A DNA stretch of 62,040 nucleotides, filler included, from Platydemus manokwari (taxonomy: Eukaryota), in the NCBI GenBank assembly GCA_037951405.1. It is 4 parts of 4 records of this genome, joined end to end, with 100 filler letters (N's around TTAATTAATTAA, not from the genome) between each part and the next. Parts side by side here need not be neighbours in the genome. Positions count along the whole stretch, not along the records: positions 39,654 to 51,366 come from JBBMOY010503331.1; 3 more parts are not named here. One strand, 5' to 3'. The translations under genes were made by a program, and so were the position numbers. Of this stretch, positions 39,654-51,366 are shown piece by piece. The notes beneath the pieces were generated by a model. That model was not told the DNA's origin, did no database searches, and saw only the letters and a list, made by a program, of their open reading frames with translations. The number at the start of each line of letters is the position of its first letter. Position 1 is the stretch's first letter.

Positions 39654-40227
39654 ATTTGAACAATATTGGTACTGCACGAGAAACAATAATTATTGCCGGA
39701 GGCTCGAATGAATACTGGATGATTTGTTTGTTAACTTGGAGTTGAATCCCTAATGGAATATTTGGACTGAAATCCCGAATGAAATATTTGAGCTGAATTC
39801 CGATCGAAATATTGAGCTGATATCCCGAATGAATTATTTGACTTAATAATGTCGTTGACTTTGTGTGTCGTGAGAAATTGTGGCAAAAATACTGAATTTT
39901 ACTTCAGTATTTATATGGATTTGAAATGTGGACGAATCATTAATTTTGTTCCTGATTTGTGGGTTTCGTTAGTAATATCCACCGTTGTCATGGTATTTGT
40001 ATTTAAATTTGAATTTCTATAGCTATATTTTGGATTGGCATGGCAACGTGGATTAATAATTTGTTGAAAAAATTTTATATCTATTATTAATATCATTCCG
40101 CCCAGACGCCTACATTTTAATTAATGTGGGTTTTCGGTTTTAATTATTATTATTATTATGTAGTTTTAATTATTATTATCATTATGTAGTTTATAGGCTT
40201 GCAGCCTGCATGGGTATCATCCCGACA
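39654..40227 (-). repeat. Putative 3' LTR, truncated by the contig end, containing four ~26-bp tandem repeats at about 39733-39843
   Basis: Starts TG at 40227 directly after the PPT. The internal repeat unit is about GAGCTGAAATCCCGAATGAAATATTT. Confidence 0.68.
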
Positions 40228-40490: not shown

Positions 40491-42135
40491 TCATTTTCTG
40501 TCATCTGTGAGATCCACTGTGTCCTCGTCCTCCCCTCCTGTTAGGTCCATTAAGACTCTGGTTCCAGATGTTTCCTCCACTGATGTTGCTTTCAGATTTG
40601 GGTTCCTATACTCTAGAAACATAGTTTTCTTTGTTTTCTTGTCAGTGTAGTGGACACCTGTAATGTGCCATTCATAATCGCCTTCCTTAATTACTTTGGC
40701 TATTTTCTCCGGTACTTTTGTTTTCTTGGGATACGGCTTGTTTCGTTTTGGTATCTTTGGTATCGACCAGATGCTTCTTTTTTCAGAAGTAGATTGTAAT
40801 TAGTTGGATGTGCTTGGACCGTATTCTTCAGAGTCTATCTACTTCCATTGGATTAAATTTCTTGCTCTCCTTTTCTGGATGCTTCTTTTTGTGCATACTG
40901 GCTGGGAGAGTGGGTGCCATGATTGGGTCTAATTTTGTTAATACGACTCTGGGCAAAGTGGCCGCATTAATTGTCTGTAGCACTGGTGCTGATGGAACAT
41001 TTTTTTCTGGTTGACTAATAGCTTGATGAGTTTGTTCCTCATCTATGACTAAGTCGCCCATTAATTCGTCTTCTTCTATTTTCATTGGGTGTTCTGTTAC
41101 ATTCTGCACTTGATCTTGCCAGGTTGGTTCCAAATTTAAATAGAGTTGCCTTATGGTCTTTGCATTATTCTCCCTTAAAAGGTCCGAAAGCCTGTCTGGA
41201 ACGTAATTAGGCATAACGGCCTTGCATATCTTTGCCCATTTATATGCTTTGCTAGTGACAAAACCCTTGCTGGCTAAGTTTTGTGCTCTTGCCATATCAC
41301 GGATGCCAATTAGATGATCCGGGTTGATCCCGCATGCTTCTAGTGCATCCGTTATCTTGTATCCGATTATTACCTTTCCTTGAGTAATCTCTCTCAGCTT
41401 ATGTTGACAGAGGATTTCGTTCCACTGTCCTATGATGTTCTTTTCCGTGATGACGTCTGTACCGTCATTTTTCCAATGTCGGACTCGTCGCCGGGGTGCG
41501 ACTCTAGAGTTTATTATTATATTTCCCTGGTAGTTTAGTACCGTGATTGCTACTAGGGAATTTTCGGTTTCCTGCCGTGTCGTCATATTCGCGGTAGCGA
41601 CCATGCGCGCACTTAGGAATAGAATTTTGCTTCGGAGTTCCATTTCCGTCATAGGCATTTTGATAAAAGAATGATACAGGTTCACTTCTTTGAGTGAAAT
41701 TGGTACATTTGGTGTGTGCGTTGTAAAGGGTACATATGGTAGGTACTCATCTCTCTCTTTCGATCACGAGTGTGGTTGTTGGCATTAGAATTTCCACTTG
41801 AGCCTTGGGCAACCTCTGATTACACTCGGTAATTTCCAGGGTTTGGAAGGGGGACATCTCGATGAGCTGATCAAGTGTACCCATCCAGATTGTGATAGGT
41901 TCCCCAGCAGTGTGCAAGTAGCTATGTTGACGTCTCCATGCACCTACTATCCAGTATATTTGCTGGTAGAGCGTCTGAGAGTTGGATGCGGAGGCAAACG
42001 TTTGTGCTTTGTCTCAGAAGACCCTCAATTTGTAAGCTGTGAAATAGAAAATCCCGAGCGTGAATGGTTCTCGCATAATTGATCTATGTCTCCGGTAGTG
42101 TAGATAATATTCAAGAGCGCATCTGATTGTGATCT
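40491..42135 (-). pseudogene. Cargo gene B: unknown N-terminal domain + REX4/ISG20-like exonuclease fold + disordered tail ending in two SIM-like motifs (about 545 codons reconstructed)
   Basis: Track ORF 40828..41685 has ILFLSARMV, AITVLNYQGNIIINSRVAP, QGKVIIGYKITDAL, IGIRDMA and NNAKTIRQLY. It extends 5' across a frameshift in an (AG)n run (LRVF*DK..ASNS..HTAGEPITIW..TTLVIE) and 3' across frameshifts to ...RVLMDLTGGEDEDTVDLTDDRK*. Confidence 0.8.
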
Positions 42136-43150: not shown

Positions 43151-43791
43151 TAAAATCGTACATGATATTTTAATTCCTCAAGGATTTTCCAAATATTAAC
43201 TATTATTTTCTTTTAACTATGGAATGTTATTGCCAAGGATATTATTAATAATATTTAAACTCTTTTCTTTAAATATTGTTTCCCTTAAATTTTATTTTAT
43301 TTTATTATAATTTATGTTTTTTGATGCCATTACAAGTAAACTATATATAAAAGTAATCTATATATTTTTATAATATTAATACTTTATTAATATTTTTATA
43401 ATATTAATATGTAATTAATATTTTTCATTAGATATTAATCCTTCATCTGGAATTCATGAACAAAATTGATACAATTGACAACATGACAAATGTATCGAAA
43501 AATGATTAATACATCGCCTCAATATTTGGTCGATGTTACTTAAAATATAATGATACATTTCAATGTATCAAACCTAACTTTTTAGCCGTGACATAATTGT
43601 TTTTTGTTACATATCCTAATTAACGCTATTATTATTATAAAACTTGGTTTTAATTACTTTTATACATTAATATGAATGACTAAATTTATACATCTATAAA
43701 CAGCTTAATCACTTTTATACGTTTATATGAATTATTAGAGATAAGACACAGAAATAAAATTAATAAGAAAAGTATTATTCATACAAAATTG

Positions 43792-45542
43792 CTAAAGTTT
43801 CAATGTTATTTTTCTACTTGGCCCAATCCCCAACACTACTGGGGGACTGATGAAGCATATCCCCATGCTTTTCTTTTTTGAAGACTCATCGGGGCTGTCG
43901 AATCTTTTTCTTTTCCTTCCTTCCGTCTCGGCTGGCTGGCTATTTGTATTTATCCACAACTCTCCTGGGATAAATTCTTTTGCATTGGGATTCAAGTTAG
44001 AATTTTTGACGATGTCCTGATGGATATATTCTTCTGCATCTCGCCATAACTGCTCGAATTCCTCTTCTTTTTCCTTTACTCCCATCTGCTCTTCAATTAT
44101 AGATTCCTACCATAGCTGTTATAAAGATCTTTCCAAAGTAAGCTTATAATCCTCACAGTCTATATCATTATCTGGTTCCATTTCTTTTTCTGGTCGCTGG
44201 ATTTTGTTAAAATGATTAATTACTTGACCTTTTTCGACTCGTTCGTTGTCCTTTAAAATCTTAAATTCTCGGATATTATTTTTCCAGAGTTTATTTCTTT
44301 TGTTTTCAAGCAGCTGCTCTTCTGCTGACTTGAGTTTCCATGTCTGGTTTTTTGCTCTGATAACTGTATTTTCATTTAATAATTCTCTGTCCACCCATTC
44401 GAATATATTGGTGGCCTCGTTTATTATTTCTTGTCCTTCTTGAATTTTCCTTTTCCATCTGGTCTCATCGTTATCATCTCCTTTATCTTGCCAGTTTGAT
44501 TCAATTTTTTGATATATGTTCATCACTTCATCCAGCTCGTCGCTTCAATTTTCGTGTTGTGGCATTTTTCTTCCCACAATAGCCGCATGCATTTCTTTTA
44601 AGTTTTTACTTAGAAAATACCGGCTTTTTTTTCATCTCTTCTTCTACAGCGATTGAGCCTTTTAATTCTCTCACTCCGAGTACTTCTTCAAGGTAGATTG
44701 ATACCGCTTTCAATTTTCTCTTCATGTCGTAGCCAACTAGTATTTTCCCTTTTGTGATTTCTATTACTTTTCTGCTCGCGTGTCCTGCATCTATGGTCCC
44801 CCTGATTACTGTTTCTGCAGTGTGAGACTTGTTTTCCTGATAATGCTTGATCTCCGATCTTGGGGAGCATATTTGATTAAAAATATCCTCTCTCTTGAAA
44901 TTTTTCAGACATATCCACACTGGATATTCCTTGTTGTTGAAGTTAATGGCGTATTTTGCATCAAAATAGACGATCAACTCTATGATTTCTTGTTGGTTCA
45001 TCGGAGTGATGTTTCTCATGAATGACATTTCCTTTTTTGGTTGTAAGAATGGTAGATTCTGGAGGTTAAATATTTGTGGCTCCCTAAACTCCACTGGCTC
45101 TAACTGGTTGGGCTCCACCAGTTCGATCATTATGGTATATGGGATAGACTTTGATTTTATTCTTATTTGGGAATACTCATTCTGGAAATTCGGCCTGCCT
45201 TGCGGTTTTAAATAGATAGAAATTGATGATTGTGACTCCAGATCAATTTTTTCCCAGAATATTCTATGAGGATATCCGATTGTACATTGTGAATTTTTAT
45301 TCTTGTGGGGCGAATTGAAGTGCTGGCAATATTTCTTTGATTTTAAACCCTCCTTGTTCTTGCGAATGGAGAATAATTACAGATCTCTTTGACTGAGACG
45401 CCGTCTTTAGATTATTTGGGATGTGGGTTACATCTGAGAACACTCTTCTTTCTATGCCAAACGGTGTCTTTCTGACTGCCGCACGAATGGCTGTATAGAA
45501 TCTTCTAGGGTAGAATTGAATGATGCTAGTTGCAGGTTCCAT
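43792..45542 (-). pseudogene. Cargo gene A: same N-terminal domain + exonuclease fold + tail with PAM2 motif and basic NLS (about 580 codons reconstructed)
   Basis: Track ORFs 45297..45542, 44606..45130, 44119..44526 and 43792..44085 join through two frameshifts and three stops. Motifs: IVYFDAKYA, IFNQICSP, KGKILVGYD, VLGVREL, SKNLKEMHAAIVG, VMNIYQKIESNWQD, SNLNPNAKEFIPG, RKRKR. Confidence 0.8.
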
Positions 45543-49152: not shown

Positions 49153-49668
49153 TTATTTCAATTCTGACAATGCATCAGCACATTCTTCTTGTTTTAATGA
49201 AAGTCTCTTGATAATCTTCGTTAAACTAACTTCGACTTTCGCTGCAGGATTGTTTCGACATTTTTCATTGGATAACTTCCTTATTTTCGCTAAGTACGGT
49301 TTCGAATCACTAATTCTTTTTTCCACAGACTCACGAACTAATGGTGGTAACGTACTAAATTTTAATGAAGACTTGGTTTTCTTCGACGCAATGCTCGGAT
49401 TTCTATGTTTATTAATCAATAATCGTCTAGCCAATTGAATACTGTTAGTCACTTTGTAATCGGTAAATGATCCATCTACTCGTCGAAAATCATCAACACG
49501 TTCCATTTCAGATTCTTGTTTATTGATCAAATTGTAATCTCGAATCTTTGCTGTAATTCGATTGAAATACTTTTCTATTTCCAATTGTTCAAGATTAACA
49601 TATTCTCGAAAGAGTTCGCGATTTCTTTTTGATTTCGATTGTTGTTCTTCTATTAAAATCGATTTCAT
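49153..49668 (-). CDS. Hypothetical basic, coiled-coil-rich protein (about 171 aa), single exon
   Basis: Long uninterrupted ORF with protein-like composition in very AT-rich DNA. An in-frame TAG lies just upstream of the ATG. No recognised domain. Confidence 0.5.
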   Translation of the reverse strand: MKSILIEEQQSKSKRNRELFREYVNLEQLEIEKYFNRITAKIRDYNLINKQESEMERVDDFRRVDGSFTDYKVTNSIQLARRLLINKHRNPSIASKKTKSSLKFSTLPPLVRESVEKRISDSKPYLAKIRKLSNEKCRNNPAAKVEVSLTKIIKRLSLKQEECADALSELK

Positions 49669-51366
49669 CAACTACTTAAAATGATCATATGGCGAATATC
49701 TTAAAAATTGATTATCAGTTTTACTACACAAAATTGTGCCATCTCTCGCCATCGAATCGAGTAACTCAATGAAACTAATCTCAATTCATTAATCAGGTAA
49801 TTTGACTCGTTTGATCGGCATCCATTTTATAAGCGATTTTTTAATGATTTCCGAAATTAGAAATGCTTTCAGAAAATCGGATCGAGAAAAATTGATTTGA
49901 CGAAGGATAAAATTGTTTAATAAACCTATTACAATTGGTAAACTCAATATTTTGGTTCTTAATTGAAAAAACAAGATTACTACTGCGTCTTATTAAATTT
50001 TATATAAAACACAATGATCTTTTGAAAGTGATAAGATCAATAAAATCTAATAATCTTACATAACAAGACCAAACATTAAAGATCTGTTAATCAAAATGAG
50101 GCAGTGATAAATATTTTATTAATTAAAATTTAATAATTCACGAAAATGCGATCGAGTGAGCGATATTAAGATTCTGTTTACTCACCAAAATTCAATCATA
50201 GCGATTGTTATAATTTACAATTAGCCACATCATTAGGAGTAGTTAGTAGAGACTTTAAAGCTTCTAAAATTGAATTTAATATAAAAGAAACTAGAAAATA
50301 TTATGAAAATTTTGATTCGAGGAAATTACAAGTTGTATTGATTTGACTTGGAAACAAAAATTATCGAAAATAATTATGAAGCAACCATTAATAAATTTTG
50401 CTATTTAGTGCAGGATTATTAAAACGTGAGTCATTTGAAGACTCGGCTAATGACGAGCAAGTTAAAAGAAATGTACAGTGAAAACAATTTTTTAAAAATT
50501 TATGTGGGTTGGAATGTACATTCTGAACCTCAATGTCACAGGAATCTAAATTTTATTGTCAGTGTATAGGATTCGGTTTCAAGATAAATAACATTCAGTG
50601 CATAATTTGCATGAATTCCAGATTCAGGATTTATGTTGTGATTGGTTTGAAGTGAAAAAAATAGTCTAGCTGATATTATGCTATAAAGGTATTTCAAAAA
50701 TGTAAGATTACAAATAAAATGAAATTCAGTAAAATAAGAAAATAAATAAAATAAAAAATTAAGTGAAAATAAAGGCGTAGACTTTTAAGAATCAAATGAG
50801 CTTGTGAATAAAAATGACGTGCTAATTTCGAAACAAATAAATTTCAATGTTTTATATTATTAGAAAAAGAAGATTTGATTGATATATACTACCCGTTAAA
50901 GATTCTTCCTATTTGACAGTGTGGGACACGAAAAAATGGTAAACTTTAAAGTAATTTTAATAAATTACAATGTTTAAGGTGGTGTACTCATTGTTCCAGT
51001 AGCAATAGATAAATAGCATAATCACAATAATATCAATAATTAATAGCACAAATAAAAAATAGAGGCAACTTTATTTATAAAAAATATCCAATTTGAAATA
51101 AAAATTCTCTTTTTTTTAATATATACAAGTGAAAATAATTCTAAAAATAGTAACTGGTACAGTTGAGATAGTTTTTGTTCAGTTATCATTGAGGAAATCT
51201 GTGATGCTGTCCTGCAGGCATTTAATCCATCTAATAGCAATAAATAAAAATGAGGTATATTTAGGGAAAAATATAATATAAACGATAATGAACAATAATA
51301 ATTTTAATGATAATCTTAATAATTATTATAAAGTAATAAAAATGAAATTTATAATAATAAAATTTG

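Follow-up and report, generated by a model that had tools for sequence, protein, structure and literature searches.

The window, here the whole 62,040-nt stretch of Platydemus manokwari DNA that was analysed, includes an 11.7-kb piece (JBBMOY010503331.1) carrying the remains of a retroelement accessory gene (gene A) and, at or just beyond the end of that gene, a short peptide of the PAM2 type. The locus raises the question of whether an element of this kind encoded a peptide that would dock on the poly(A)-binding protein (PABP) of its host and, if so, whether that peptide belonged to the same protein as the exonuclease-like fold of gene A. PABP is a hub attacked by many viruses and required by retrotransposon RNPs, and the literature searched yielded no account of a retroelement that encodes a PAM2 peptide. 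The features of the locus are collected in Table 1.

Table 1. Features of the gene A locus and its surroundings (positions are those of the window).
Feature	Position	Strand	Evidence or remarks
Gene A, broken retroelement accessory gene: cupin-like N-domain, DEDDh exonuclease-like fold, tail	43792-45542	minus	Family homology, paralogy with gene B, AF2 and Foldseek
N-terminal region of gene A, family motif IPNxLK, cupin-like by homology	45026-45542	minus	Matches to N-terminal regions of relatives
Exonuclease-like domain of gene A (ISG20/REX4/PAN2-type DEDDh, RNase_T superfamily)	44485-45025	minus	PDB profile, AF2, Foldseek, catalytic columns
PAM2 open frame, ATG start, 97 codons	43792-44085	minus	C-terminal tail of gene A or small separate ORF after gene A
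PAM2 motif SNLNPNAKEFIPG, Paip2 type	43963-44001	minus	Translation, Pfam PF07145, match to 1jgn_B
Basic patch GRKRKR, NLS-like by pattern alone	43903-43920	minus	Translation
Gene B, second, divergent and decayed paralogue of gene A	40494-42013	minus	Open 285-codon core, family similarity
Open frame of 172 codons, coiled-coil-like	49156-49671	minus	No match to Pfam or to related loci
AT-rich short tandem repeats, periods 25-28	39739-39841, 40137-40192, 43362-43443		Flank genes A and B; no function suggested

A PAM2 Peptide of the Paip2 Type

A sequence-only reading of the locus had placed a canonical PAM2 motif at 43963-44001, and this was borne out on the minus strand. The proposed scoring against Pfam PAM2 (PF07145) gave 26.1 bits for the open frame (E 5.8e-6), above the gathering cut-off of 20. 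The top match of the frame among PDB chains is the Paip2 PAM2 peptide in complex with the PABP C-terminal domain (1jgn_B, E 0.0022), to which the motif aligns without gaps and is identical at 12 of 13 residues. These include the consensus Leu, Ala, Phe and Pro, which stand in register with the MLLE-bound Paip2 peptide. The designed 'superPAM2' (8smo_B) is the second PDB match, again ungapped. In Markov simulations of the same size and dinucleotide composition, the strict PAM2 pattern was expected 0.0003 times per piece, against one occurrence observed. Judged by its residues, the peptide is a genuine canonical PAM2 of the Paip2 (high-affinity) type, and its identity to the Paip2 peptide suggests that it would bind MLLE.

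The sequence-only reading had invoked PAM2 motifs of the PAN3/Tob type; the motif is of the Paip2 type instead. The Paip2 PAM2 is one of the two tightest binders among 13 human PAM2 peptides and is 20- to 1000-fold tighter than most of them, the PAM2 motifs of PAN3 and TOB being 100- to 1000-fold weaker (bioRxiv 10.64898/2026.01.10.698208). Given its 12/13 identity to the Paip2 PAM2, the peptide would compete strongly at MLLE.

The basic, NLS-like patch that had been noted after the motif is also seen on translation, 14 residues on, a nuclear role being suggested by pattern only. Among the relatives of gene A (described below), basic clusters occur within the last 150 residues in 11 of 43 proteins and within the first 150 residues in 4 of 43.

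The frame that carries the motif is open over 104 codons, which at the local composition would happen by chance with a probability of about 4e-4; the 11.7-kb piece has nine open frames of 100 codons or more, compared with 1.2 expected. Its G+C content (0.34) is at the same level as that of gene A and falls to 0.20 just beyond, in a sequence of about 30% G+C. The motif lies 56 residues before the end of the frame, while in Paip2 the PAM2 is at the very C-terminus. A word search for relatives of the frame returned none, including no homologue of 57-182 residues. Similarity to any protein is confined to the 13-18 residues of the motif, with nothing outside it. There is no homology to the Paip2 family along its length and no PAM1; the PAM2 alone matches, and it does so in a retroelement-derived gene region.

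Gene A Is a Pseudogene

Gene A consists of the PAM2 frame and three more open pieces upstream on the same strand, each piece being searched separately. The damage inside its family-homologous part amounts to two frameshifts and one in-frame stop, and the in-frame stops number three if the PAM2 frame is counted in the same chain. This copy of gene A is a pseudogene. The PAM2 frame is also the frame of the last helix of the exonuclease fold. Between the end of the fold and the PAM2 frame are two closely spaced stops, flanked by 141 and 104 stop-free codons, and the ATG of the PAM2 frame is 33 nt past the preceding open frame. The motif had been described as sharing the frame of the fold's end with only two stops intervening; this is correct for the last helix but understates the damage, as the N-terminal domain and the greater part of the fold sit in two frames other than that of the PAM2.

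A variant genetic code behind the in-frame stops was ruled out, all three stop codons being represented among them. Nor does an intron account for the change of frame within the exonuclease fold, since similarity to gene B continues across it.

Gene B lies 2 kb downstream of gene A. Its core shares 25% identity with the exonuclease-like piece of gene A (E 2e-12); the family regions at either terminus are off the frame of the core, indicating at least two frameshifts. The C-terminal piece of gene B resembles the C-terminus of the relative P0001 (z 7.1), and its direct comparison with the tail pieces of gene A gave chance-level scores. A word search with gene B returned no match. The long open pieces of genes A and B indicate that the decay of both is recent.

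Word search, scans of viral and metagenome contigs and exact look-ups all failed to turn up a close copy of gene A. The contig scans used the PAM2 frame, the gene A piece and the family alignment, each with no match, and exact look-ups of four ORFs of the window found none on record. Rfam and tRNA scans also gave no match.

The Exonuclease-Like Fold and Its Catalytic Residues

A two-sequence profile compared with the PDB matched ISG20, SDN1 and ISG20L2 only (E ~0.01). An AF2 model of gene A's own piece, made with the alignment of relatives as input, has a core pLDDT >90, and Foldseek with this model gave ISG20 as the top match (1wlj, E 2.5e-7), followed by ISG20L2 and SDN1, with PAN2 lower. 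As modelled, the gene A piece has the RNase H-like DnaQ fold. Pfam RNase_T does not match gene A or gene B; of 38 family members, 16 match it at E <=0.1, and three (P0012, P0043 and P0045) score above the cut-off.

The first three catalytic positions of gene A are D, K and D, with the catalytic Glu changed to Lys, so the earlier description of a DEDD-type fold lacking a catalytic residue stands. The nearest relative of gene A (P0007) also reads D, K, D. In gene B the catalytic positions read S, R, K, L and N, and all five residues are lost. Across the 38-row alignment, the full D-E-D-H-D set is present in 23 of 36 relatives, and several residues are lost in 13. Since 23 of 36 relatives are fully catalytic by residues, the 'dead fold' is a trait of a sub-lineage; by the same columns, it applies to gene A, gene B and a minority of the family.

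A Family of Cupin-DEDDh Proteins

A HMMER scan of 1.84 billion representatives recovered 115 relatives of gene A, 54 of them at E <=1e-10, mostly 430-610 residues in length. The family is a DEDDh (H-x4-D) exonuclease with a cupin-like domain and a disordered tail. These three parts are seen in the AF2 model of an intact relative, P0005 (overall pLDDT 81.8). Residues 1-135 are modelled as a cupin-like beta-barrel (pLDDT >90), and the corresponding IPNxLK N-domain has no Pfam match. The exonuclease domain superimposes on ISG20 (TM 0.84, 1.8 A) and also matches PAN2 (E ~1e-9). The approximately 85 residues past the exonuclease fold are disordered in the model (pLDDT <50), and the PAM2 of gene A may have lain in a tail of this kind. 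Short linear motifs are usually found in such disordered stretches. The tails of the relatives span 6-240 residues.

For ten relatives the cluster records were consulted; all ten come from metagenomes or SRA assemblies, and none has a descriptive name. None of the 54 relatives at E <=1e-10 is named, the protein family appears to be undescribed, and the joining of a cupin to an ISG20-type exonuclease seems not to have been described either. Neither a cupin-DEDDh family nor the combination of PAM2, exonuclease and retroelement was found in the literature searched.

The gene model of P0007 is fused to a biotin carboxylase N-domain and is presumably an element-derived gene merged by annotation with an adjacent host acetyl-CoA carboxylase gene. 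A tail motif, [FWY][ILV]PP, recurs in P0001, P0003, P0012, P0025, P0044, P0045 and P0059, and is followed by P-x-x-Y-L in four relatives. The PAM2 core of gene A, EFIPG, might be an elaborated version of this tail motif. Pfam gave no support for the tail motif as a weak PAM2, and an iterated HMM search for a common C-terminal module gave no signal.

Retroelement Context

In three independent metagenomic elements (those of P0006/P0118, P0004 and P0045), the family gene lies directly 3′ of an env-PR-RT-RNaseH-IN polyprotein, a context seen in relatives with enough flanking DNA. The giant frame of loci L002, L004 and L005 encodes, besides aspartic protease, RT, RNase H and integrase, the domain of a viral fusion glycoprotein (PF24664), L002 and L004 being one element in two samples. 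In L003 the giant frame upstream of the exonuclease gene has RT-RNaseH-IN only. The exonuclease gene of the related loci is surrounded by ORFs of 50-220 residues, and ORFs of 50-90 residues directly follow it in relatives. From its position 3′ of the env-pol polyprotein, the family gene can be placed among the accessory genes that env-bearing Ty3/gypsy-like retroelements carry; the related loci have the layout of such elements. Env-bearing Ty3/gypsy-like ('errantivirus-like') elements are widespread in metazoans (PMC13524379).

The fusion-glycoprotein domain in L002 (1-9036) and L005 (443-9769) is N-terminal to PR-RT-RNaseH-IN within one frame of 3000-3700 residues; an env-before-pol order is unusual for env-bearing Ty3/gypsy elements.

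Neither pol nor env nor an LTR could be detected within the 11.7-kb piece. When the pol/env ORFs of relatives and whole loci were compared with the piece by tblastn and tblastx, genes A and B were the only matches, and a search for LTRs and TIRs found just short, chance-level repeats. The membership of genes A and B in an element is therefore assigned by homology. The 172-codon open frame (Table 1) could be a further accessory ORF or a host exon.

One Chain or Two

The sequence-only reading had looked to intact copies for conservation of the motif, and this was not borne out. A loose PAM2 pattern is absent from the 115 relatives and from every frame of six related loci. Pfam PAM2 matches none of 38 family members (E <=0.1), nor any of nine more relatives or the C-terminal piece of gene B (E <=10). 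The motif is known from one broken copy only.

Several features point to a single chain with the exonuclease fold: the frame shared with the last helix of the fold, the continuous composition, the disordered tails of relatives and their C-terminal basic clusters. Pointing to a separate ORF are the two close stops followed by an ATG and the small ORFs found after the gene in relatives. Also on this side, the one likeness to the C-terminus of a relative (weak, z 3.6) is at the end of the middle piece of gene A, not in the PAM2 frame. Taken together, these observations leave a PAM2 in one chain with the exonuclease fold at slightly less than an even chance, and a PAM2 on a small separate ORF at somewhat less again.

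Comparison with Known Systems

The PAN2-PAN3 and CAF1-Tob deadenylases offer a parallel: in them an RNase_T-type DEDDh fold is brought to PABP-coated poly(A) via a PAM2, as may have been the case with gene A. The differences are considerable. The PAM2 of PAN3 and Tob is weak and carried on a separate adaptor, whereas that of gene A is of Paip2 grade. PAN2 has WD40 and UCH-like domains, in contrast to the cupin N-domain of the gene A family. PAN2-PAN3 is an active exonuclease, while gene A is without the catalytic Glu. The likeness is at most one of 'works like'.

ISG20, ISG20L2, REXO4 and SDN1 are the best profile and structural matches, and most relatives retain the D-E-D-H-D residues of this group. 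Genes A and B, in contrast, fail Pfam RNase_T and have lost catalytic residues, and the gene A family adds a cupin-like N-domain, a long disordered tail and a retroelement setting.

The Juno and Vesta LTR retrotransposons and the Terminons of bdelloid rotifers encode a DEDDy exonuclease as ORF3 (PMC5408684). Like the members of the gene A family in related elements, this is a DEDD-superfamily 3′-5′ exonuclease specified by an extra ORF past pol, and some of these elements have a paramyxovirus-F-like env (PMC5408684). The rotifer ORF3 is RNase D-like (DEDDy), whereas the gene A family is DEDDh, and no PAM2 was reported in the paper on the rotifer ORF3s (PMC5408684).

Maelstrom and EXD1, DEDD derivatives that are inactive but still bind RNA (cited in PMC5408684), set a precedent for an RNA-binding role of a dead DEDD fold. 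By analogy, we propose that such a role may also fall to the 13 of 36 relatives that lack the complete set of catalytic residues. Maelstrom and EXD1 differ in being host piRNA-pathway genes, with no detectable sequence relation to the gene A family.

Possible Origins and Roles of the PAM2 Peptide

We lean, by a little, towards the view that the locus preserves a lineage-specific PABP-docking peptide of high-affinity, Paip2-like type, encoded in the accessory region of an element. In the live progenitor, the PAM2 would have been either in the disordered tail of the accessory protein or in a small ORF directly after it. The peptide would dock the element protein on the MLLE of the host's cytoplasmic PABP, placing an RNA-binding exonuclease-fold module, or a small Paip2-like protein, on poly(A) RNPs, where it could compete with the far weaker PAM2 motifs of PAN3, Tob and GW182. 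The motif would have been gained within the lineage, having evolved in place or been captured from a host Paip2-like message, rather than being a family trait. Docking might protect, shorten or re-localise poly(A) tails.

An extended form of this lineage-specific docking view appears unlikely: that one lineage fused a Paip2-grade PAM2 and an NLS to a cupin and an ISG20/PAN2-type fold, giving a PABP-tethered (pseudo)deadenylase that would manipulate host poly(A) metabolism. It would also have env-bearing retrovirus-like elements of AT-rich invertebrate-type genomes as the carriers of the accessory family.

It is possible, if still doubtful, that the peptide belonged to a separate protein of 97 residues, with a short acidic stretch, the PAM2 and the basic patch, which would act independently of the fold as a Paip2-like competitor or as a nuclear re-localiser of PABPC. 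The spacing of the ATG, 33 nt past the preceding frame, and two stops only a few codons apart with 141 and 104 stop-free codons on either side would suit such a protein, as would the Paip2-like character of the motif, the 50-90-residue ORFs directly after the exonuclease gene in relatives, and the location of the sole likeness to a relative's C-terminus in the middle piece. Those small ORFs, however, have no similarity to the PAM2 frame and no PAM2, no homologue of 57-182 residues was found, and the frame shared with the end of gene A, together with the C-terminal basic clusters of the family, fits a single chain equally well.

The sequence-only reading had proposed a deadenylase decoy, a dead DEDD fold and a PAM2 in one chain that would shield the poly(A) tails of element mRNA. 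This now looks improbable. It is consistent with the D, K, D residues shared by gene A and P0007, with PAN2 as one of the family's best structural matches, and with a Paip2-grade PAM2 that would outcompete PAN3 and Tob for MLLE. Against it, the two close stops and the ATG stand between the motif and the rest of gene A. As 23 of 36 relatives have the full DEDDh set and none has a PAM2, a dead fold with a PAM2 is not a recurring design. Binding of the host Paip2 type, moreover, represses translation and displaces PABP rather than protecting tails (bioRxiv 10.64898/2026.01.10.698208).

The PAM2 frame is quite unlikely to be a host-derived passenger, that is, an exon or retro-copied piece of a Paip2-like host PAM2 protein that came to lie beside the decayed gene and had no role in the element. 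The 12/13 identity to a cellular Paip2 peptide, the presence of the motif in no family member and possible splice signals near both ends of the frame (by eye, unscored) would be in keeping with such an origin, but protein similarity does not extend beyond the 13-18 residues, the frame is 33 nt from gene A and shares its strand, frame and composition, and no more exon-like open frames occur downstream on the minus strand before gene B. A chance match in AT-rich decayed sequence, to which a single occurrence in a pseudogene might point, can be dismissed, with 0.0003 occurrences expected even for the minimal pattern, 12 of 13 residues matching and a frame open for 104 codons at a probability of about 4e-4.

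PAM2 peptides, viral motif mimicry and retroelement exonuclease ORF3s are each already known singly. The role of the rotifer DEDDy ORF3s was left open in the paper on them (PMC5408684). If the motif is common to live copies, the lineage-specific docking peptide favoured here would be a clean case in which an endogenous retrovirus-like element mimics a short motif, and would give a first functional handle on the DEDD-type exonuclease genes in such elements.
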